NCBI RefSeq assembly: GCF_006345805.1
Contig: NW_021825606.1
Location: forward strand, 1-15,090
Length of the DNA: 15,090 bases
DNA from: Octopus sinensis
Lineage: Eukaryota
Direction: 5' to 3'
Positions 3,512 to 15,090 of the stretch are shown here, in pieces. The notes under the pieces are model-generated. The model did no database searches. It was not told where the DNA came from and worked only from the letters and a program-made list of their open reading frames with translations. Position 1 is the stretch's first letter. Every line of letters begins with the position of its first letter. Made by a program: the position numbers and the translations under genes.

Positions 3512-3530
3512 TTTATTTTATTTTGATCAA

Positions 3531-3560
3531 TTTATATATATATATATATATATATTTATA
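3531..3560. repeat. (TA)n microsatellite, probable 3' end of the Penelope-like copy
   Basis: tatatatata... run just downstream of the hammerhead. Confidence 0.8.
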
Positions 3561-4037
3561 TTTGAGTCTGTCTCTGTGTATGTGTGTGTGCAAGCGCATT
3601 AATTTCCAGTGGGAGTCTTTACCTACTTCTACCACCACCCCACCACCACCTCACGTTTAAACAACCACCTCAACAGTTTTATGAACCTCTTATTAATTAT
3701 AGCAACATCAAAAGTATACTTTAGAATTTCATCTTATTCTTCTTTACTAGTCTTGATCTTTTAATCAGTGTTCACTCGTGTTCAGCTCCCCTAAAACTTA
3801 CTATAGTTAGGAATACAGGTAGTTAAGCTGAAACAATCTATTTAGGACATCTTTATCCTGTCAAGAACACCTTCTCATAGCAACATCTAGAGGATCTTAC
3901 GAAGGTTGATTTTACGGGCAAACATCAAATGTACATGATCAGTTTGATCAAGTATACAGTAGAAAACAATAATGACACATTGATATCCATCCTGATTTTC
4001 ATGTAAATTTTCATTTTCTATTTTTACTTCCACAAAG

Positions 4038-4247
4038 GGTTCTGTTCAGTTGGATATTCAAAACAATCAGAAAAGGACACCATTGCTTGAAGCCGTTTCC
4101 CAGGGTCACCTCGGAATGACACACCTGTTAATAGCCCTGGGTGCAGACATAAATGCTGTTGATGGTGAAGGTAACAGCTGTTTGCACCTAGCCATGGCAA
4201 CAGAAGTGTTTAATTCCGAGGATGCACCCTTGGATTTACTAAACGAA
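4038..4247 (+). CDS. MIB2: MIB2-like E3 ligase, internal ankyrin-repeat exon (phase 0-0)
   Basis: Polypyrimidine tract + AG (4036-37), GTAAGT at 4248. 210 nt: GSVQLDIQNNQKRTPLLEAVSQGHLGMTHLLIALGADINAVDGEGNSCLHLAMATEVFNSEDAPLDLLNE. Ankyrin TPL..A/G..LHLA motifs; resembles the last ANK repeats of Mind bomb 2. The symbol means family-level likeness, not proven orthology. Confidence 0.9.
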
Positions 4248-4264
4248 GTAAGTTTTAAATTGTT

Positions 4265-4342
4265 TGTGTATATACATGCGTGTGTGTCTGTGTGTATGTG
4301 TCTGTGTGTGTCTGTGTGTGTGAGTGTGTGTGTGTCTGTGTG
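4265..4342. repeat. (TG)n/(TGTC)n microsatellite
   Basis: Visible repeat run. Confidence 0.9.
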
Positions 4343-4893
4343 ATTTTTATATTTGGGAGTCTTTGTGGGAGTGTGGAGAGAAGAGACGCAGACAGACAAA
4401 CTTTGCTTGTCATGTATCAATTCTCCCCCTATCAACCCCATCCTCCATTACCATTCCGTAATCCAGTCTCCCCTTATGACCCGAGTGATATTATGTAACA
4501 AACAATATTCCATCTCCTTTCACTCTCAAAGATGTCGTCTGACCACGGTCGAGAGGTGACCCATCTCGGTTGTTGGCCATATAAACACAGCCATCACAAT
4601 GTGACGGAGAAGTGGCCTATTTAATAGAGGAGATATTATTCTCAATTAACAATGATGCAGGATAGAAGAGATGTCTGAGCTTTATAGTGCTGGTGCCATG
4701 GTAAATACCTCCAGTCCATTCTATGAAGAATTCTGAGTGAAACTGCTCTCTATCCTACTTCTTGTACCCGACATGAATCCACTGCCTTCTTGTGGACATG
4801 TCATAACATTGTTCAATGTTAAGACACTAGAGAATGAATACAAAAAATCATGGTCCTTAGAGAGTTTTCCTGTATTTAAGTTCTGTACTTAGG

Positions 4894-4945
4894 TACACAC
4901 ACACACACTCACACACACACACTCACACAGACAAACACACACAAG
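4894..4945. repeat. (CA)n microsatellite
   Basis: Visible repeat run. Confidence 0.9.
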
Positions 4946-5869
4946 TAGTGATTTTGAGTTTGAGTATATATCTTGTAAAATGCTGTTTAAAGCCCGTTTA
5001 CTGTATTCGGCTATCTGATGTCATCAACAGTATGGACTTCAATACTACTGGACTTTTTACTGTCATCTCATAAATAAAGCAGTTTTTTATAATTCTTATA
5101 TTTTTCAAAATTAAGATAAACAAAGTACTTTTTTCTGTTAATCTAAAACATATTCTCCTTCATTTTCTACAATGCTCTTCCATCTTTCTGCTAGACTTGC
5201 AAGTCGCCTCTTCCAAAATTCACTTGTCCGTGATTAAAAATACTCCTCCATTACTCTTCTGACTTGACACTAATTCCTGCTTCCTTTACTTTACCGTCAT
5301 CATTCAAAGATGCTTCTTGCTTAATTATGGAAACATTATTGATATGTTTGGTCATGTCTGTGTGGTATTGACTTTGTTATGTTATATGTGTTTTTGTTTC
5401 TGATATAACTTATGTTCTTTCTTCTCATGTTGTGTTATATTTATATATACAATACTCTTTCTTATGGCCACATGTTCGCCTTTATCAAACCAATTATATA
5501 GATAGGTTCTTGTTGGTTTGTTCTTCCTATATTTGATTTTTCTATTGAATATATTGTGATATTTGTGATTGACAAGTAAATATTTACTCATTAATTAACA
5601 ATAAGCTTGATGTTAATCAATACGGTTTCTCCTGCTCAATGTAATGACAATATATTTAGAGAGTGTCTCAGTGTTGAAAATAAAGTAAAAACATGAAAAT
5701 TGGAAATGGACTCAATTAAAGATTATGTAGGAACTCAATACTTTGTAATTGCTTTAATTGGTGGATAAACAACCTATGAGTAAATTTAGATAAACTTTTG
5801 TGTAATTAGGGGCATTTGCTTTGAATATTTGTGTAATATTGTCATCATTTTATATTTCATCATTTGTAG

Positions 5870-6045
5870 TGCTGTACTGCCCTTAACCTGAAAAAGAAGG
5901 AAAGGCTCTCTGGTGTAGTGGTTGCGAGATATCTCGCCAACCAGGGAGCTGACTTTCACCATAAAAACAACAACAATAACACACCATTGGACCTCATTAA
6001 GGACCCAAATTTGAGAAAAAAATTAGAAGCATTTTTACCACCACA
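5870..6045 (+). CDS. MIB2: MIB2-like E3 ligase, terminal ankyrin exon (phase 0-2); missed by the ORF track
   Basis: TGTAG acceptor (AG 5868-69), GTAAGT at 6046. 176 nt: CCTALNLKKKERLSGVVVARYLANQGADFHHKNNNNNTPLDLIKDPNLRKKLEAFLPP(Q). Resembles Mind bomb GADL..N..G.SPLDL..DPNL. Its phase exactly bridges the 4247 and 8512 exons. Confidence 0.9.
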
Positions 6046-6865
6046 GTAAGTATTTCCTGGCAATGGAACAGATAAACCAGTACATTTTCTATTTTGTATA
6101 TAATCATGTTTATATGTTTATTTCGTTTTAATTCTACCAATACATTATACTGTCGCTAGTGTTTTTGTCAAAGGCCACACAATAAACAATATGCAGTTGT
6201 CAGGAGATCAAAGAAAGAACATGATTTTGATTACATTCACATGATTCGTAGTGTTGCCAGTTATACTTCACTGTCCATCACCACCTACCCCTCTTCGTTC
6301 CCTATTTTAAAGATTTGTGATCAATAGGAAAATATAGATCTAAATAATGAAGTGAATGAATTCCATTTTGAAACTGTTACTTAGAATTAAGTGGAATTTA
6401 TCTGTCTACCAACATCTTTTTCTCACTCTTCTAAGTCCGAATCAGTCAATATTAAGAATGATTTCATAGAAAAATAACCTACAAACACACACCAACTGTG
6501 TATATATTATATTTCTGCAAATACTGATGGAATATTGCCACATATCTTCATAGAAAAAAAAAGCTGTCAGGAAACGTAAATAATTCAAGTAACACATATA
6601 CCATTACTAGGTGCTTTAGTCGCCTTTGACTCCCTTATTTTATAAGATTTGGCAATTTCTTTGCCATACATCTCTCTGTATGAGCTACTTAAGAAGCAGG
6701 CACATTTCCCCCTAAGTGAATATACAAAACTTTCTTTGTTGAAATTCAGATATTGTTTATAGATATTGATTTTTGGACTGTATAAATATTGTTCTGCTTT
6801 ATTCAATTGACACGCTTCAGAAGATTTTATTTGTTTTTACAAATAATCGTTTATGTGAATGTTTT

Positions 6866-6905
6866 AATAATAATAATAATAATAATAACGATAATAATAA
6901 TAATA
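6866..6905. repeat. (AAT)n microsatellite
   Basis: aataataataat... run. Confidence 0.9.
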
Positions 6906-6906
6906 T

Positions 6907-7395
6907 GTCTACAGAGCGCAGCTGATATTATTGGAAAGGGACAAAATAAGGGACAGAAAACTAGAACTACATGCACGATACATATAATAAAGCCTCCCAA
7001 AATCATGGTGGAAAATATCTCATCAGCATTGCCCAAATGATGTTGGCATCAGCTTTAAGATATACCCAATGCCTGGGCCCCGTATTATCTGCCCACAACA
7101 TAAATCAAACTCGCATCACATAACAACAATACGGCAAAATTATTTCACCTCAAGTGGCCCCGCTCCATTTAGCATTACACCAAAATACATTAAAGCAGAA
7201 AAAGACCCCCATAAAGTTCAAGAAGTATTTGGAAAAATCCTTCAAGAAATCCCGGATAAAACTCCAACACCAGGATATGTCCCCGTAAACAGCAACTCTC
7301 TCCTCGAGTGGGTCATGTTGTCCGCATCCTGATTCGCCCGGTAGTGGGATTACGTTAAACATGACCTGCGCTAATGCTGGCGCGACCTATCATGC
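6907..7395 (+). mobile_element. CR1-like LINE 3' end (degenerate ORF2 C-terminus + 3' UTR, (TA)n tail)
   Basis: With stops and frameshifts it reads ..CPNDVGISFKIYPMPGPRIICPQHKSNSHHITTIRQNYFTSSGPAPFSITPKYIKAEKDPHK/FKKYLEK/ILQEIPDKTPTPGYVPVNSNSLLEW*. This matches, from recall, the CR1-clade tail pattern GP.LFN.LP..I...FK..LDKFL..IPD.P..PGY...SNSL. Confidence 0.75.
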
Positions 7396-7438
7396 ATACA
7401 TATATATTATAATATAATATTATATATATATATATATA

Positions 7439-7729
7439 TCACGTGATCACGTGACCGACCAGTCCATCAGATGTAGTTACACATCGCCGGTCACAATGCG
7501 TTCGCATTGTTTTAGCCTTCGAATGACGCCACCCCACTGGCTAAGCGAGCAGGCCAACAGAAGAAAGAGTGGTGAAAGAGTACAGCAGGGATCACCACCC
7601 CCTGCTGGAGCCTCGTGGAGCTTTTAGATGTTTTCGCTCAATAAACACTCACAACGGCAAGTCTGGGAATCGAAACCATGATCCTACAACCGCGAGTCCG
7701 CTGCCCTAACCACTGGGCCATTGTACCTC

Positions 7730-7732
<3 letters not shown>
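7439..7732 (-). mobile_element. tRNA-derived SINE (~295 bp) flanked by (TA)n/(CA)n
   Basis: The minus strand begins GTGGAGGTACAATGGCCCAGTGGTTAGGGCAGCGGACTCGCGGTTGTAGGATCATGGTTTCGATTCCCAG: A box TGGCCCAGTGG and B box GGTTTCGATTCC at tRNA spacing. It ends in a GTCACGTGATCACGTGA tail running into (TA)n. Confidence 0.85.
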
Positions 7733-7777
<45 letters not shown>

Positions 7778-7807
7778 CCTCCACATATATATATATATGA
7801 TAGATAT

Positions 7808-8110
7808 ATCATCATCATCATCATCATCGTTTAACATCCGTTTTCCGTGATAGCACGGGCTGGACGAAAATATATATAAGTAATATTCGTAGGCACGCCA
7901 ACATGAGTATCTGTTCGGATGGACTCTACTGCGAATGTTTAACCCCAAGAGAACACCTCCTCTAGCTAATTAACAATGCAAAGGTGCATCCGATTAATTG
8001 CGAGCAGGGGATCGAACCCCTACCATCTTATAGCAACAGAACCAGCAGACCAGGTCTGGTTTCGGGCTATTCCTGCCACTCTTCAGTACTGGACACCTCA
8101 TCTGCTAATC
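7808..8110 (-). mobile_element. Hammerhead-headed short retroelement (candidate retrozyme / ribozyme-SINE) with a (GAT)n tail
   Basis: Minus-strand order: hammerhead (8107-8031), hairpin containing GTTCGATCC (8023-8004), long hairpin (7999-7968), tail hairpin CCGTG-CTAT-CACGG (7858-7845), AAAACGGATGTTAAAC(GAT)n. The tail is homologous to that of the SINEs at 12106 and 14583. That these parts form one element is inference. Confidence 0.6.
8031..8107 (-). ncRNA. Type I hammerhead ribozyme with GUC cleavage site (cut between 8048 and 8047)
   Basis: Minus strand: CCAGTA-CTGAAGA-G(T)GGC-AGGAATA-GCCC-GAAA-CCA-GACC-TGG-TC-TGCTGG. Core CUGAAGA/GAAA/UH intact. Stem I 6 bp (one G.U), stem II 4 bp with a bulged U, stem III 4 bp + tetraloop. 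Distal stem I TAGCAGA pairs with TCTGTTGCTA. Confidence 0.88.
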
Positions 8111-8289
8111 TGTGGAGACAGGATGTATATAATAAAGTATGTGTATATAAAGAAACCTCTGTAGATATATTTGTTCAGAAGAAATGAGTTCGATGTTAGA
8201 AGTGAAATATATTTCTGGAATATATGCAGTTCACTGTGTGTCAACCAATTTCTATGATGTATCAGGGTCAAGACAAACATTTATCAATG

Positions 8290-8332
8290 TATGTATGCAT
8301 GTGTGTGTATGTATGTGTGTGTGTGTGTGTGT
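8290..8332. repeat. (TG)n/(TATG)n microsatellite
   Basis: Visible repeat run. Confidence 0.85.
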
Positions 8333-8511
8333 TTCTGCGTCATTTAACTACACAAAATGCTGTATGTATGTAAATATTTAAAGAAGAGTTTCTGCTCTAC
8401 TCTTGGTAGTTACTGATGTATCTTATAATATTCTCTATTCCGAACATGTAAATAATGTAATATTTGTTATAAATGAATGTTATTGATTGGATGTTTCTGT
8501 TTTGTCCACAG

Positions 8512-8651
8512 ATGTTTGTTGCGCAGAAATAAAGAGGCCACAACAAAAGTTCATCCCTGTGAACACCTTCTGACATGTGAAGAATGTTCAAACGTTCCAC
8601 TTAAACGATGCCTGAGGTGTTTGAAACCTGTAACAAGCAGAGGTCGAGTTG
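8512..8651 (+). CDS. MIB2: MIB2-like E3 ligase, RING-HC exon (phase 2-1)
   Basis: CACAG acceptor (AG 8510-11), G|GTAAGA donor at 8652. Encodes CLLRRNKEATTKVHPCEHLLTCEECSNVPLKRCLRCLKPVTSRGRV, with MIB-type C3HC4 spacing and PCxH...CEEC...KxCxxC; ligand 2 is Arg. Confidence 0.9.
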
Positions 8652-8970
8652 GTAAGAATATTCTTTGCTGATCTGTCTGTTTGTCCTGCTTGTCCCATTG
8701 CCCTTATTGTGTAGAATAATATACTTCATGTTGTTATGTAGACAGAGGTCTGCCATAATCTGGCAGATTTATGATAAAAGGTGTTCCTAGTGTCTGTTCT
8801 CTGTAATAGTATATCTCTCACACTACATCCACTAAACATTGACCTTATCCAAGTAGGAAACATGTCACACTTCAAGAGGGTTGTAGTCTGCAACATAAAG
8901 ATAATGGACGATTCTGCAAGATAATTAGTGAGTAACTGAAGTATCAATAAATCTCCATCAACTCTATAAT

Positions 8971-9018
8971 TAATTATGAGTTATTAGAAGATAATTATGA
9001 GTTATTAGAAGATAATTA
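8971..9018. repeat. 21-bp tandem duplication (taattatgagttattagaaga x2.3)
   Basis: Exact copies at 8971-8991 and 8992-9012. Confidence 0.85.
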
Positions 9019-9750
9019 AATACAACAGTACTTACAAGGACATCAGTGTCATCTTTGGTAAAGTATTAAAATTAGTAGAATATTTTAAAGGAGTAAAATT
9101 ATATGTCACTAGTTTGAGAGACTTTAACACACAATTCCATGTTGTTATGTTTGTAATTGGAGGTATTAAGGCTAATAGAGACAGTTTTGTTTGTCAAGCA
9201 ACCAGATCATGAAACCTTCAAATATATCCTGAATGAGATGACATTCTGGTGAACTGTGAAGTTAAAATTAGGGATTATCAGCAACAATGTTTAACAAAGA
9301 GATTAGGTGTATGTTTCTCCTTCTTGAAGTGGTTGTGACATGTGTTTGTTGTTATATCTTTGATGAATAAATATGTTGACACTGGAATCAAACAGGTTGT
9401 TAGTGAAGATTAGATTTAGGGTTATAGATATAAGCAAGGAAACCAAAGCCTACAGATAAACTGTTATTAAGTGATAATTAAATGATATAATTACAGCATT
9501 GTTAGATTATGTAGGATATCTTAACAGAGAGAGGAAATTTACAAAGATCAACTAGAGTTCGTTTTGGAGCTAAATATTGGCTATTACATGGGCCCACTGT
9601 TGAAAGTATAAAAGTATTGACCAAAACAATTATGATCGCTGGTTGGCCATTGATGGTATGAATGTCTCTCAATAATAAAATATAGATTATTAATAAATAT
9701 AAAGGGATTGTGCTATAAATAAATATAAAACTTGGAAATACATATTTCAG

Positions 9751-9830
9751 AGAGTCCAAAGTTTGAAGAGAAGGGAGTGCAGACTGTGGCAGAGACAGTT
9801 GATGAGTTTAAAATTAGAGATCTTAATTAA
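9751..9830 (+). CDS. Short exon after the RING, (E)SPKFEEKGVQTVAETV; either ends at 9801 (ATGAGT in place of a donor) or reads through DEFKIRDLN to TAA at 9828-9830
   Basis: TTTCAG acceptor (9745-9750). Phase 1 fits the RING exon and gives an open frame. Homologous with its flanking intron to the exons at 11777 and 14254. Confidence 0.7.
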
Positions 9831-10796
9831 TTTCTATAGATTTTACATTCACCTCAAGTATTTTGCGTATTAGAATGGTGGAGAACAAATCCCATTTCTA
9901 ATTTCCATTTGAAAGGTTAGCTCTAAAGTAATTGTATTAAAAATATTACTGAAATTTCATAAAGTCATGGTTAACATGTTTGGTAAAATGGATAAATTAA
10001 AAGCCACAATAGAGTTAATATTGTCTTCTGGAAGAGGGAACTATAATTTATTTTTTAGGTGTAAACTCGTGAGTTAATAAGATAGTTGTTTGTTTTTCTA
10101 CTAAGATCTTTCGTAAGTTTTCTGATAGGTTATTCTTGATGTTGTTATGTAGCCAGATGTCTGTCGTAATATTTTGTATTTTCTGGGGTTGTGTACCCTG
10201 AATGTCTCTGGTTAGAATACATTTTGTAGTTGCAAATTAGAAAATTCTAATTAAATGTTAACTCTGTATAAGAATATTCATCATGAACTTAATTTTATTA
10301 AATGTTAAATTTAGTATTCAACCGTGAACATCTGTTTATATTTAATATATATTGGTGCTTATACAAAATATACGATCATAAATTGAATATGACTTGAATA
10401 CACAAATCCTTGTTTGTAACTATATATAATATACACTTATTACATTGTTTGAACAACATTTACCATCCATATAGTCATTCTTTTTCTCACTCTTGTTAGA
10501 TTTTAGATGATATTAATGCTAAAAGAGGCACAGTTTTCTGAGTGTTTCACCCTTTGGTCTTGATTGTTGCGTTCAAATTATTTAATGAAAGATAGTCATT
10601 GTTATTTGACCAGGAAATGAATTAATGATTAGTATTTGGCAGTGGACTTGGTTATATCTTTCTTCGTTTGCTCATGGAACTACCATAATATTAGCTGTGC
10701 TGAGACACAATCATATTCATAGTAATGAAGGTTATATGTTCTTTACTCAGATTATATACAATCTATATTGATATCTAGTATTGCACTGTCAAGCAC

Positions 10797-11393
10797 AGTG
10801 CCATTGTATCACATATATACCCAATTATCATGATAATTAATAAGCTATAATTCATTAACTCTCTTACATTTGTATGTCTGAAATGTAAACATATTTTGCC
10901 ATAGGAACTTCCTGTACCCTCACCTAACATTTTATATCTTGTTAGGGATCATGGTGGGGAAAGAGTGTATGGTTTCAAGGTTGTTGGGGATGGTTTTTAG
11001 GGGACAGATTGTGTTCAGGGTGGAAGGTATGCACATAAAGGACATGTCTTTATGGGCGCAGTTTTACTTAATTAGAGAGGAATGTTGATTAGTGAATTCA
11101 GTACCATTGTATCACATATATACCCAATTATCATGATAATTAATAAGCTATAATTCATTAACTCTCTTACATTTGTATGTATGAAATTAAACTTTTTTTG
11201 TCATAGGAACATCGTGTACCCTCACCTTACATTTTATATTGTTAGGGATCATGTTGGAAGGGTGTATGGAATTTGCTTGTGGAGATGATTTTTAGGGGAC
11301 AGATTGTGTGCGGGGTGGAGGTATGTACATAAAGGACATGTCTTTATGACCTAAGTTTTACTTAATTAGAGAAGAATGTTGATTAGTGAATTC
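10797..11393. repeat. ~300-bp direct tandem repeat inside unit A (10797-11099, 11100-11393); single copy in unit B (13578-13878)
   Basis: Both copies run from agtg/accattgtatcacatatatacc to gttgattagtgaattc. Confidence 0.9.
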
Positions 11394-11526
11394 TAGAGAT
11401 GAGAGTACTGTGCCATGCCATAGATTTGGCAGTTATAAGAAAAGAAAGACAAAGCTAAGAGAAAACTCTTATCAAGTGTTAATTAAATGAGATAATTGCA
11501 ACATTGTTAGAATATTTAATGTGTTC

Positions 11527-11558
<32 letters not shown>

Positions 11559-11776
11559 TGGATTTAGGAATGTTAGTCTGTTTAATTGTGGACATATTGG
11601 GCTATTACATGGGACCACTGTAGAAAGTACAGAAATATTGACCAAAACCATAGTGGTCAACATTTGACCATTAACGACAGGAATTGAATGTCTCACAATA
11701 AAAAGATAGAGTTTAATAAAAATAAAGATAAAGAAAGTTTATTATTAAATGTAAAACTTGGAAATATTTATTTCAG

Positions 11777-11854
11777 GGGCTCCAAAGTTTGAAGACAGGT
11801 GTGTACAAACAGAGGCTACATGTCAGGAATTAGGGGCTGCAAATCAGGCAATAG
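11777..11854 (+). CDS. 78-nt symmetric (phase 1-1) exon, copy 1: (G)APKFEDRCVQTEATCQELGAANQAI
   Basis: TTTATTTCAG acceptor, AG|GTGAGT donor, 3n length, open in the host frame, homologous to the 9751 exon. Confidence 0.8.
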
Positions 11855-12105
11855 GTGAGTATAAAATAATAGTTCCCAATTGATTTCTGTAAGATTTTCT
11901 TCCCCCGAGTATGTTGTGCTTGAAAGAATAACTGAAACCAGCTTCCATTCCTATTTTCCAATTGAACAATTATCTGTATAATAATTGAATTAAAGATATC
12001 GATTTACTGAGAGTTTATGAAATACCCATTGAGGTTAATGCTGTTGGTAATAATGTTCAAATTAGAAGACACAATAGAGTTAATTTTGTCAATTGGTCAC
12101 AGAAC

Positions 12106-12136
<31 letters not shown>

Positions 12137-12501
12137 TTAACATCCGTTTCTTATGGCGGCATGGGTCGGACGATTTCACTGGCAAGGCAGTAGGCTGCGC
12201 CAGGCTCCAATGTGATCTGGCAAGGTTTCCACATATGTATGCCATTCCTAATGCCAACCACTCCGAGAGTGTGGTGGGTGCTTTTTACGTGCCACCGACA
12301 CAGGAGCCAGTCGGGGTGGGGGCTGGCATCGACCACGTTCGGATGGTGCTTTTTACGTGCCACCGGCACAGGGAACTAGTCAGGCGGCAGTGACAAGGAC
12401 CTATGCTTCTATGGTACTTATAACGTGCCACAGGAACAGGTGCCAGTCAGGCGGCACTGGCATCGGTCACAACTACAATTTCCATTTTGATTTCGATCTT
12501 G
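12106..12501 (-). mobile_element. SINE-like repeat with a (GAT)n tail and three internal ~68-bp repeat units
   Basis: (CAT)n-TTAACATCCGTTTC..GGACG tail on the + strand. Internal units gtgctttttacgtgccacc..cacagg..agtc start near 12278, 12347 and 12414. It resembles an abundant octopus repeat as I recall it. Confidence 0.8.
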
Positions 12502-14253
12502 AATTGCTTTTGATTTTTCATTTCTGTTATTGCCTGGTGGACTATGATGAAAACGAGGGGTTTAGGAATGATCCCTAGTGAACTCCTACTTCTATCCGGA
12601 ATTCTTCACTATACTCATTGCCGATCCTCACCTTACTACAGGGCCTCTTCAACTCTTATAATCGCTCGTCAATCCCTAGTTTCCGCATTAGCTGTAAAAA
12701 GGATTCTATTAAATATTCCACTGAAACTTCATAAAATTAAGGTTAACGTGGTTGGTAAAATGGATAAATAAGAAGACATAATAGAGTTAATGATGTCTTT
12801 TAGGACAGAGAACTAAAACATTTTGTTGTTTATTTGTAAACAGGTGAGTTAACGAGAAAGATTTTGTTTCTTTTACTACTAAGGTCTTTCCTAAGTTTTC
12901 TCATAGGTTATTGTTGTTGTTATTGTTATGTAGCCAGATGTCTGTCATGACATGTTGTTTAGGTACCTACCCTGAATGTCTCAGGTCAGAATAACTTTGT
13001 TATAAATTAAAGAAATTAAAAATCAAATCTCTAAGATTGTAAGTATAATGATCATTAACGTTGATTAAATATTAAATTTAGTATTGAACGGTGAACATGT
13101 TTACATTTAAACAAAATATTGGTGTTGACAAAAAATATAAAGATAGGAATTAAATTTGAGTTCCCTGTGTGACTTGAACTCACAAATCTTTGTTTGTAAC
13201 TATATATAATATACACTTATTACATTGTTTGAACAACATTTACCATCCATATAGTCATTCTTTTTCTCACTCTTGTTAGATTTTTAGATGATATTAATGC
13301 TAAAAGAGGCACAATTTTCTGAATGTTTCACCCTTTGGTCTTGATTGTTGCGTTCAAATTATTTAATGAAAGATAGTCATTGTTATTTGACCAGGAAATG
13401 TATTAATGATTAGTATTTGGCAGTGAACTTGGTTATATCTTTCTTCGTTTGCTCATGGAACTACCATAATATTAGCTGTGCTGAGACACAATCATATTCA
13501 TAGTAATGAAGGCTATATGTTCTTTACTCAGATTATATACAATCTATATTGATATCTAGTATTGCACCGTCAAGCACAGTGCCATTGTATCACATATATA
13601 CCCAATTTTCAAGATAAATAATTAGCTATAATTCATTAACTCTCTTACATTTGTATGTCTGAAATGTAAACTTATTTTGTCATAGGAACATCGTGTACCC
13701 TCACCTTACATTTTATATCTTGTTAGGGATCATGGTGGGGAAGGGTGTATGGAATTTGGCTTGTGGAAATGTTTTTTAGGGGACAGATTGTGTGCGGGGT
13801 GGAGGGTATACACATAAAGGACATATCTTTATGGGCTCAGTTTAACTTAATGAGAGAGGAATGTTGATTAGTGAATTCTAGAGATGAGAGGACTGTGCCA
13901 TGCCATAGGTTTGGCAGTTATAAGAAAAGAAAGACAAAGCTAAGAGGAAACTCTTATCAAGTGTTAATTAAATGAGATAATTGCAACATTGTTAGAATAT
14001 TTAATGTGTTTTTAGAGAGAGAGAGAGGGAGAGGGTGGATTTAGGAATGTTAGTCTGTTTTATTGTGGACATATTGGGCTATTACATGGGACCCCTGTAG
14101 AAAGTACAGAAATATTGACCAAAACCATAATGGTCAACATTTGACCATTAACGTCAGGAATTGAATGTCTCACAATAACAAGATAGAGTTTAATAAAAAT
14201 AAAGATGAAGAAAGTTTATTATTAAATGTAAAACTTGGAAATATTTATTTCAG

Positions 14254-14331
14254 GGGCTCCAAAGTGTGAGGACAGGTGTGTACAAACAGAGGCTACATGT
14301 CAGGAATTAGGGGCTGCATCTCAGGCAATAG
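14254..14331 (+). CDS. 78-nt symmetric exon, copy 2: (G)APKCEDRCVQTEATCQELGAASQAI
   Basis: Same splice sites as copy 1; 4 nt differences (F>C, N>S, one synonymous); frame open. Confidence 0.8.
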
Positions 14332-14582
14332 GTGAGTATAAAATAATAGTTCCCAATTGATTTCTGTAAGGTTTTCTTCCCCCGAGTATATTGTGCTTGA
14401 AAGAATAACTGAAAACAGCTTCCATTCCTATTTTCCAATTGAACGATTATCTGTATAATAATTGAATTAAAGATATCGATTTACTGTGAGTTTATGAAAT
14501 ACGCATTGAGGTTAATGCTGTTGGTAATAATGTTCAAATTAGAAGACACAATAGAATTAATTTTGTCAATTGGTCATGGAAC

Positions 14583-14975
14583 TCATCATCATCATCATCA
14601 TCATCATCATTTAACATCCGTTTCTTATGGCGGCATGGGTCGGACGATTTCACTGGCAAGGCAGTAGGCTGCGCCAGGCTCCAATGTGATCTGGCAAGGT
14701 TTCCACATATGTATGCCATTCCTAATGCCAACCACTCCGAGAGTGTGGTGGGTGCTTTTTACGTGCCACCGACACAGGAGCCAGTCGGGGTGGGGGCTGG
14801 CATCGACCACATTTGGATGGTGCTTTTTACGTGCCAGCGGCACAGGGAACTAGTCAGGCGGCAGTGACAAGGACCTATGCTTCTATGGTACTTATAACGT
14901 GACACAGGAACAGGTGCCAGTCAGGCGGCACTGGCATCGGTCACAACTACAATTTCCATTTTGATTTCGATCTTG
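14583..14975 (-). mobile_element. SINE-like repeat, duplicated copy of 12106-12501
   Basis: Near-identical sequence at the homologous position in duplication unit B. Confidence 0.8.
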
Positions 14976-15090
14976 AATTGCTTTTATTTTTCATTTCTGT
15001 TATTGCCTGGTGGACTATGATGAAAACGAGGGGTTCAGGAATGATCCTAGTGAACTCCTACTTCTATCCGGAATTCTTCACTATACTCAT

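Follow-up and report, generated by a model that had tools for sequence, protein, structure and literature searches.

The window analyzed here is a whole 15,090-bp unplaced contig of Octopus sinensis (assembly GCA_006345805.1), which carries on its plus strand a gene for a protein with ankyrin repeats and a RING domain, followed by a linker encoded in very short exons. We found that two of these mini-exons, designated c2 and c3, each encode the octamer EDRCVQTE, whose heptad DRCVQTE agrees with the pattern [DS][KR]x[TVI]Q[TV][DE] of ligands of the hub protein LC8 (DYNLL). LC8 occurs throughout animals. Both exons are real and already annotated as coding in RefSeq, including one variant in which c2 is skipped. 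Judged from sequence, an LC8-binding role is plausible, with mixed evolutionary support, and the linker is a candidate for the known class of multivalent LC8 clients rather than a system of a new kind. Taken as a whole, the explanation we prefer, that cassette mini-exons of an Octopus gene family form a linker docking LC8 as a multivalent ladder, is put forward tentatively, as somewhat less than probable.

The products obtained by splicing the predicted exons were identical, residue for residue, to three RefSeq models on the contig. XP_036354468.1 (X1, 210 aa) joins the RING exon to c2 and c3 and continues into the read-through GEYKIIVPN*; XP_036354469.1 (X2, 184 aa) joins the RING exon to c3 and skips c2; XP_036354470.1 (X3, 175 aa; an exact match to our P0089) joins the RING exon to a third mini-exon, c1, and ends at the TAA at 9830-9832. 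Since the contig ends after c3, the X1 and X2 models run through the c3 donor. Direct inspection of the splice signals of c2 and c3 revealed a pyrimidine-rich acceptor, tatttatttcag/G, and a consensus donor, AG/gtgagt (the slash marks the exon boundary), and because both exons are of phase 1-1 and the RING exon ends in phase 1, they add in frame. A preliminary description of this DNA had listed three exons encoding EEKGVQTV, EDRCVQTE and EDRCVQTE, the latter two of 78 nt, and their coordinates, sequences, lengths and phases were all confirmed, as was its statement that c2 and c3 have four differences, none of them in the motif. These are found at exon positions 13, 17, 66 and 67, and leave DRCVQTE untouched: the change at position 13 replaces Phe with Cys at LC8 position -6, that at position 17 is silent (GAA to GAG) in the Glu at -5, and those at positions 66 and 67 replace Asn with Ser.

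c1 proved to be of a different kind. Its reading from 9751 is (E)SPKFEEKGVQTVAETV..., encoding ESPKFEEKGVQTVAETV. The site homologous to the donor (9802-9803) reads AT (tgATGAGT, compared with agGTGAGT in c2), so that c1 is possible solely as a terminal coding exon, with a stop 26 codons in. L001 and L003, two of the three O. sinensis contigs (L001-L003) compared with the window at the DNA level, share this dead donor. The idea that c1 is a dead pseudo-exon was dropped, as it serves as the last coding exon in X3 and in two paralogous models (P0088 and P0090). This older copy, whose donor is dead, yields a short isoform with one weak motif and without the Death domain found in relatives.

Self-comparison by BLAST showed that the window contains tandem intron-exon units, in keeping with the suggested tandem duplication of symmetric mini-exons. 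The segments around c2 (Y, 11099-12618) and c3 (Y', 13577-15090) are 95.6% identical, the preceding segments X and X' are 85.6% identical, and the c1 region (9426-10025) shows 67% identity to the exon cores of both Y and Y'. Thus, the paralogy of the three exons holds, but c1 cannot be counted as a like exon, being of the 51-nt type, lacking a donor and carrying a weak motif. The contig end falls inside a third unit, and this, together with the four 78-nt exons of L001, indirectly supports the expectation that more copies lie beyond the window.

Fit of the repeat units to the LC8 motif

The LC8 consensus, as given by Rapali 2011 (PMC3078936), is [D/S]-4 K-3 X-2 [T/V/I]-1 Q0 [T/V]+1 [D/E]+2. 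The anchor triplet [T/V/I/S]-Q-[T/V] is present as VQT in c1, c2 and c3. Also, the flanks of c2 and c3 (D-4, R-3, C-2 and E+2) satisfy the rules described in PMC6607443, and those of c1 (E-4 and V+2) do so weakly; flanks count as favourable with Asp or a polar residue at -4, a basic or large one at -3, Asp, Glu or Pro at +2, and -2 free of bulky aromatics. As a proxy for LC8Pred, we built a log-odds matrix from 79 validated binders (Table S4, PMC6607443) and compared it with 32 anchor-containing non-binders. EDRCVQTE scored 13.3, which corresponds to the 37th percentile of binders (leave-one-out) and lies above 81% of anchor-containing non-binders; its flank-only score exceeded 94% of the latter. 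The c1 octamer EEKGVQTV scored 9.5 (14th percentile of validated binders), and a hydrophobic residue at +2 is unfavourable for LC8 binding (PMC6607443). Some sister exons scored higher, i.e. KDKETQTQ (17.2), ADKGVQTD (16.9) and EDKCVQTE (14.8), and EVKETQTL represents another sister type. The probability that a random octamer scores at least 13.3 is 1.2e-5, and outside the linkers only 4 among 94,278 octamers scanned in 249 proteins reached this value. Besides, all residues of EDRCVQTE are seen at their respective positions in one validated binder or another, among them gephyrin EDKGVQCE, MAST1 RHQSVQTE and Asciz QSTCTQTR (Table S4, PMC6607443). The exact consensus fit claimed for DRCVQTE therefore holds, and the matrix places EDRCVQTE within the range of binders.

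As far as sequence and gene models show, X1 carries two EDRCVQTE units, and the RefSeq model of L001 (P0002) carries three plus one VKK unit. Units of O. bimaculoides include SDKEVQTA, SDKGVQTV and KEKGVQTV. Among 39 distinct units of the family, the anchor was compatible with LC8 in 26 and broken in 13.

When 12 diverged exon types were aligned, the motif Gln was the sole invariant residue, and T+1 and V/T/S-1 were among the next best kept; position -2, the 'x' of the motif, varies freely and -3 is mostly K/R. Within the 78-nt type (9 young copies, with very few changes), the octamer codons had the lowest pN/pS of the exon, 0.16, compared with 0.39 in the C-terminal half, and the first five codons showed amino-acid changes only. 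The disordered setting assumed in the preliminary description is consistent with the AlphaFold2 model of paralog P0006, in which linker residues 152-202 have a pLDDT of 30-33 (82-86 in the RING and 72-90 in the Death domain); on this basis, disorder and accessibility are predicted for the linker.

Gene family and origin of the linker exons

Relatives of the window gene form a family represented by ~100 models in O. sinensis, O. vulgaris and O. bimaculoides, whose architecture consists of ankyrin repeats, a single zf-C3HC4_3 RING, a linker made from 0-6 mini-exons and a Death domain. The designation 'MIB1/MIB2-like' of some models, and with it the 'MIB2-like ligase' of the preliminary description, is a naming artefact which reflects merely ankyrin and RING similarity: no MIB/HERC2 or ZZ domains were found in the full-length relatives P0098, P0100 and P0092, which contain Ank, zf-C3HC4_3 and Death only, while the 5' end of the gene itself lies outside the window. 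The repeats had been placed in the linker of an E3 ligase after its RING; a linker it is, but it lies between the RING and the Death domain rather than in a tail, and the RING of this copy has lost a zinc cysteine. In the window the contig ends before the Death exons. Among relatives, the Death domain (PF00531) scored 43.9 bits in P0100 and 31.1 bits in the P0008 tail; the tail of the L001/P0002 type is below threshold (17.3 bits), yet it can be aligned to the other tails. A protein search with the spliced exons matched solely Octopus proteins, and a profile search run exhaustively over 1.8 billion representatives gave full RING-linker-Death matches from Octopus species only, among the matches listed. 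The linker repeat matched no Pfam family, and literature searches found no published work on this octopus family, nor on a link of LC8 to MIB or Death-domain proteins.

L001 (O. sinensis VCDQ01005652.1), the locus nearest to the window gene, aligns collinearly with window positions 3530-11099 and is 94.5% identical over 7.6 kb. It contains, in order, c1, four 78-nt exons, a decayed pseudo-exon and two Death domain exons; its RefSeq model omits c1. The four 78-nt exons read FEDRCVQTE, CEDRCVQTE, TNCEDRCVQTE and SEDRCVKKE, and the pseudo-exon (27546-27600) has caa in place of an acceptor. L002 also has four 78-nt exons, and at ~18943-18993 a decayed 51-nt linker pseudo-exon, GSQNFKEKEAKMMAGAV, which was left out by the gene model. 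In L003 we found a related exon of 72 nt, ASPKFADKGVQTDLQLLEPTSEQS, three exons of the 51-nt size, VNRTFEVKETQTLAEPV, and a truly dead c1-like copy (26281-26335), in which the motif Gln codon is changed to TAG and the donor is dead too. Counting of copies across loci and species showed that the number of 78-nt exons per locus varies from 0 to 4, and 1-4 unit copies were found in many O. sinensis and O. vulgaris models.

Comparison of the 72-nt exon (L003 28031-28102) with c2 gave an unusual pattern: the intron flanks are 94% and 91% identical, whereas in the exon itself identity falls to 77% over the motif half and 46% over the remainder. Either the exon has changed far more rapidly than its introns, or gene conversion has homogenised the flanks. 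Arrays of other repeats were observed in sister genes, namely five ECP[KR]C.EK.VKTV units with CxxC pairs in P0106 (O. vulgaris CAI9744105.1), four VCPKSEDKAVQAVVESV units in P0101 (O. sinensis XP_029656683.1) and eight PSTSQHE heptads ahead of the Death domain in P0113 (O. bimaculoides XP_014783439.1).

With regard to origin, the first Death-domain exon (L001 30098-30169; ESPVLKEKDLLRVAKRLG..., ESPVLKEKDLLRVAK...) has the acceptor flank, the first codons and the downstream intron in common with the linker exons, and shows 73-81% identity to window positions 9700-9860 and 11726-11886. Because of these shared features, the linker exons look like serial duplicates of a unit which once held Death-domain exon 1, suggesting that they began as duplicates of that exon.

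Possible LC8 docking and its alternatives

Under the explanation that we prefer, the linker is put together from small symmetric exons, 51-78 nt long and of phase 1-1, which multiplied via unequal crossing-over between tandem intron-exon units of ~2-2.8 kb, starting from a founder unit which was apparently a duplicate of the first Death-domain exon. Each intact unit may dock one LC8 dimer by beta-strand addition, and two chains could then be zipped, parallel and in register, into an LC8 'ladder' that would keep two dimerisation-dependent RINGs, and likewise two Death domains, next to each other, with the number of rungs set by gene copy number and exon inclusion. In Foldseek comparisons the family RING resembles the dimeric RINGs of cIAP2, XIAP, BIRC7 and IDOL; since it is like these dimerisation-dependent RINGs, an LC8 clamp right after the RING would make mechanistic sense in intact paralogs. 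Functional recruitment of LC8 by the linker units appears possible from the motifs, although we stop short of calling it probable. A broader proposal would be an Octopus genomic 'valency dial', in which each symmetric mini-exon is one LC8 rung in lineage-specific RING/Death-domain adaptors, 0 to 4 or more sites descend from a duplicated Death-domain exon, and copy number and exon inclusion tune both RING dimerisation (E3 activity) and Death-domain oligomerisation; this we regard as clearly unlikely.

Several observations weigh against LC8 docking, and many of them would fit a neutral expansion of the spacer, in which the RING-to-Death tether is lengthened as a by-product of unequal crossing-over and VQT is a partnerless relic of the founder exon, an alternative that we consider possible but on the doubtful side. 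Among ten 78-nt copies, exon divergence (4.3%) is similar to that of the introns (6.3% upstream and 3.8% downstream), and between exon types, as for c2 and the 72-nt exon, exons diverge as fast as their flanks or faster. The overall Nei-Gojobori pN/pS is 0.60 by pairwise pooling and ~0.95 by hand count (~10 non-synonymous to 3 synonymous changes), which, with about 13 changes in total, is indistinguishable from neutrality. The 13 units with broken anchors, a third of the total, carry VKT, VKK, VQR, VQM, SQR or MKT and are expected to fail in binding; some models (P0007) hold broken units only, and the older 17-residue units mostly have the unfavourable Val at +2. Many paralogs have no linker exon at all, and decayed pseudo-exons occur, such as those with the caa acceptor in L001 and the TAG codon in L003. 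Sister arrays were amplified equally readily without an LC8 anchor (5 VKT in CAI9744105.1, 4 VQA in XP_029656683.1 and 8 PSTSQHE in XP_014783439.1), indicating that the amplification mechanism is indifferent to the motif. The shared EK..V..VAE pattern may partly be inherited from Death-domain helix 1 (ESPVLKEKDLLRVAK). Moreover, DAZL VDRSIQTV and TMV LDTSIQTE, both look-alikes of EDRCVQTE, are validated non-binders (Table S4, PMC6607443), so motif resemblance is no guarantee of binding. Neutrality is, however, harder to reconcile with a Gln that is invariant over the 12 exon types while the remaining exon turns over, with the limits on -1 (V/T/S) and -3 (mostly K/R), with several independent types arriving at canonical KETQT or DKGVQTD, with the low pN/pS of the octamer and with a chance match rate of about 1e-5 per octamer. 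These findings bear on the earlier proposal of a tunable LC8 array under construction. Its tunable part is supported in genomes and gene models by variable copy number (0-4) and by exon skipping, seen in X2 and in one paralogous gene whose RefSeq isoforms include all 7 non-empty combinations of 3 repeat exons; in another family gene isoform numbers reach X22, but such diversity may be inflated by short-read junction mapping, as the repeat exons are ~95% identical. Construction of the array for the sake of LC8 valency is not borne out, given equal exon and intron divergence, 13 of 39 anchors broken and the anchorless sister arrays.

It is also conceivable, albeit very unlikely in our judgment, that the repeat is functional with a partner other than LC8, such as a TRAF-type MATH domain (TxQE/TxEE), a PIKK through an SQ/TQ phospho-cluster, or through Cys metal or redox chemistry. 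The C-terminal half, EATCQELGAASQAI, is nearly invariant across 78-nt copies, and the Death-domain/RING context suits immune-type adaptors. The TRAF2 consensus is (P/S/A/T)x(Q/E)E, which is fitted by TCQE (in the 78-nt unit), TVEE, TQEE and ASEE in 4 of 12 exon types, but this tetrad is very degenerate and missing from the other 8. Every 78-nt unit contains ASQA, a PIKK SQ/TQ candidate, and yet most 17-residue units have no SQ; there are 2-3 Cys per 26 residues, with CPKC/CPRC in Cys-rich sister units, but Cys positions differ between types. The absence of a Pfam family match for the repeat also speaks against this alternative. TRAF6, RHIM, caspase and SUMO-interaction readings were judged by eye against consensus patterns and rejected: no PxExx[aromatic/acidic] TRAF6 site was seen, the VQ[TV] core is without the following Gly of a RHIM, a caspase site at FED/R would have an unfavourable P1', and a SUMO-interaction motif is absent in the 78-nt unit. 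Another alternative, compatible with any of the above and rather unlikely, is that the window represents a decaying paralog or haplotig in which the role of the repeats is not exercised. In the window, the RING has Arg as its second zinc ligand (CGC, 8522-8524; CLLR), where paralogs have Cys (TGC; CLLC), which leaves the eight-ligand C3HC4 set incomplete and probably crippled the ligase part of this copy; the domain scores below the Pfam cut-off. In L001 the RING (~14520) keeps the Cys, but a few codons downstream 1 nt is deleted from a CCC run, which shifts the frame and may be an assembly error; unless one of the two lesions is such an error, RING damage differs between the two closest copies. 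Both lesions count against the preferred explanation as well. The contig, moreover, is short and unplaced, without 5' exons or Death exons, and its models terminate by intron read-through. Decay is opposed by the six exons, all with intact splice sites and reading frames, and by the three isoforms modelled by RefSeq, and a RING-dead paralog could still serve as an adaptor or decoy.

If LC8 docking is accepted, the octopus linker may be compared with known clients. In ASCIZ/ATMIN and Drosophila Asciz, according to PMC10046861 and Table S4 of PMC6607443, several TQT-type motifs of variable strength, some weak or degenerate, are likewise distributed along a disordered region, and a two-chain LC8 ladder is presumed. 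However, ASCIZ is an ancient transcription factor regulating LC8 itself and has its motifs inside large exons, whereas each octopus motif has its own 78-nt symmetric exon in a young, copy-number-variable tandem unit of ~2.5 kb; the octopus array is also located between a RING and a Death domain, has VQT rather than TQT anchors and consists of candidate motifs only. In Nup159, the KANK1 L2 linker and the dynein intermediate chain, LC8 serves as a dimerising or rigidifying clamp, and the mechanism proposed for octopus is the same, with conversion of a disordered tether to an aligned duplex or rod by LC8 dimers (KANK1 preprint); sister octopus exons carry KETQT, the core of mouse Dync1i1 YSKETQTP. 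The octopus linker is unrelated to these by descent, with regular 26-residue spacing and a valency given by exon number. Validated binders with Val at -1, namely gephyrin EDKGVQCE, ZFPM1 SDKGVQTP, MAST1 RHQSVQTE and SON RCVSVQTD, are close to EDRCVQTE, ADKGVQTD and EDKCVQTE, but represent single or double sites in unrelated proteins. MIB1 and MIB2 share the order of ankyrin repeats and zf-C3HC4_3 RING, and Foldseek matched the MIB1 ankyrin domain and IAP/IDOL-type RINGs; unlike them, the octopus family has neither MIB/HERC2 nor ZZ, a single RING, and a C-terminal Death domain that MIB proteins lack.

Should the motifs bind LC8, these loci would provide a natural allelic and isoform valency series of 0, 1, 2, 3 or 4 near-identical sites at a fixed 26-residue spacing, resembling the series built by hand by biophysicists for multivalent LC8 ladders, and would connect RING/Death-domain signalling with the LC8 hub in a cephalopod family that is lineage-specific and expanding rapidly. 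If they do not bind, what is left is a young exon array of the ordinary kind, in a gene that has been annotated already. Regardless of LC8, the locus is a clear case of exon-by-exon building of a linker via tandem symmetric mini-exons, apparently seeded by a Death-domain exon.

Feature coordinates and other repeats in the window

Coordinates of the coding exons, motifs and tandem units are given in Table 1. The Met codon (MTHLL...) in the first of these exons is the start in the RefSeq models.

Table 1. Coding exons, LC8-like octamers and tandem units in the window.
Feature	Position	Strand	Evidence and remarks
Ankyrin-repeat coding exon, phase 0-0	4038..4247	+	Translation and splice sites; Pfam Ank_4 47 bits, Ank 33 bits; agrees with XP_036354468.1-70.1
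Second coding exon, with the final ankyrin repeat and the segment ahead of the RING; phase 2 at its end	5870..6045	+	Splice sites; collinear with L001, 94.5% identity
RING exon, zf-C3HC4_3 type, ends in phase 1	8512..8651	+	Pfam 22.8 bits, cut-off 27 bits; zinc-ligand codon 8522-8524 is CGC (Arg)
c1, 51-nt-type linker exon, last coding exon of X3	9751..9832	+	Acceptor catatttcag; TAA 9830-9832; encodes ESPKFEEKGVQTVAETVDEFKIRDLN*
c1 LC8-like octamer EEKGVQTV (positions -5 to +2)	9765..9788	+	Weak: Glu at -4, hydrophobic Val at +2
c2, 78-nt cassette exon, phase 1-1, encodes GAPKFEDRCVQTEATCQELGAANQAI	11777..11854	+	In X1, skipped in X2
c2 LC8-consensus octamer EDRCVQTE	11791..11814	+	Matrix score 13.3
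c3, 78-nt cassette exon, phase 1-1, encodes GAPKCEDRCVQTEATCQELGAASQAI	14254..14331	+	In X1 and X2
c3 LC8-consensus octamer EDRCVQTE	14268..14291	+	Sequence identical to the c2 octamer
First full tandem unit	9917..12618	.	X 9917-11099, intron; Y 11099-12618, intron, c2 and SINE-like insert from ~12107; self-BLAST, repeat families D2-D8
Second tandem unit, cut by the contig end	12688..15090	.	X' 12688-13878; Y' 13577-15090 with c3 and second SINE-like copy; self-BLAST

The DNA of the window is AT-rich and intron-rich, with abundant microsatellites and repeats resembling short interspersed nuclear elements (SINEs). A (CAT)n-headed, GC-richer SINE-like element is located in each tandem unit (~12107-12700 and 14581-15090), and was therefore duplicated along with the unit; a fragment of this element is also found at 7802-7867, in the intron upstream of the RING exon. 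A local tandem duplication of 300 bp (10796-11099 and 11099-11393, 88.9% identical) lies within an intron and is apparently absent in L001, as judged by the overlap of BLAST pieces. No tRNA or Rfam family was called in the window by ARAGORN or Rfam, including a tRNA-like stretch on the minus strand (~7660-7727), which has A-box- and B-box-like motifs and microsatellite flanks and is probably the head of a tRNA-derived SINE. Finally, positions 1-541 match the reverse complement of 899-1431 with 93.8% identity, an inverted repeat which looks like a foldback or hairpin transposable element.

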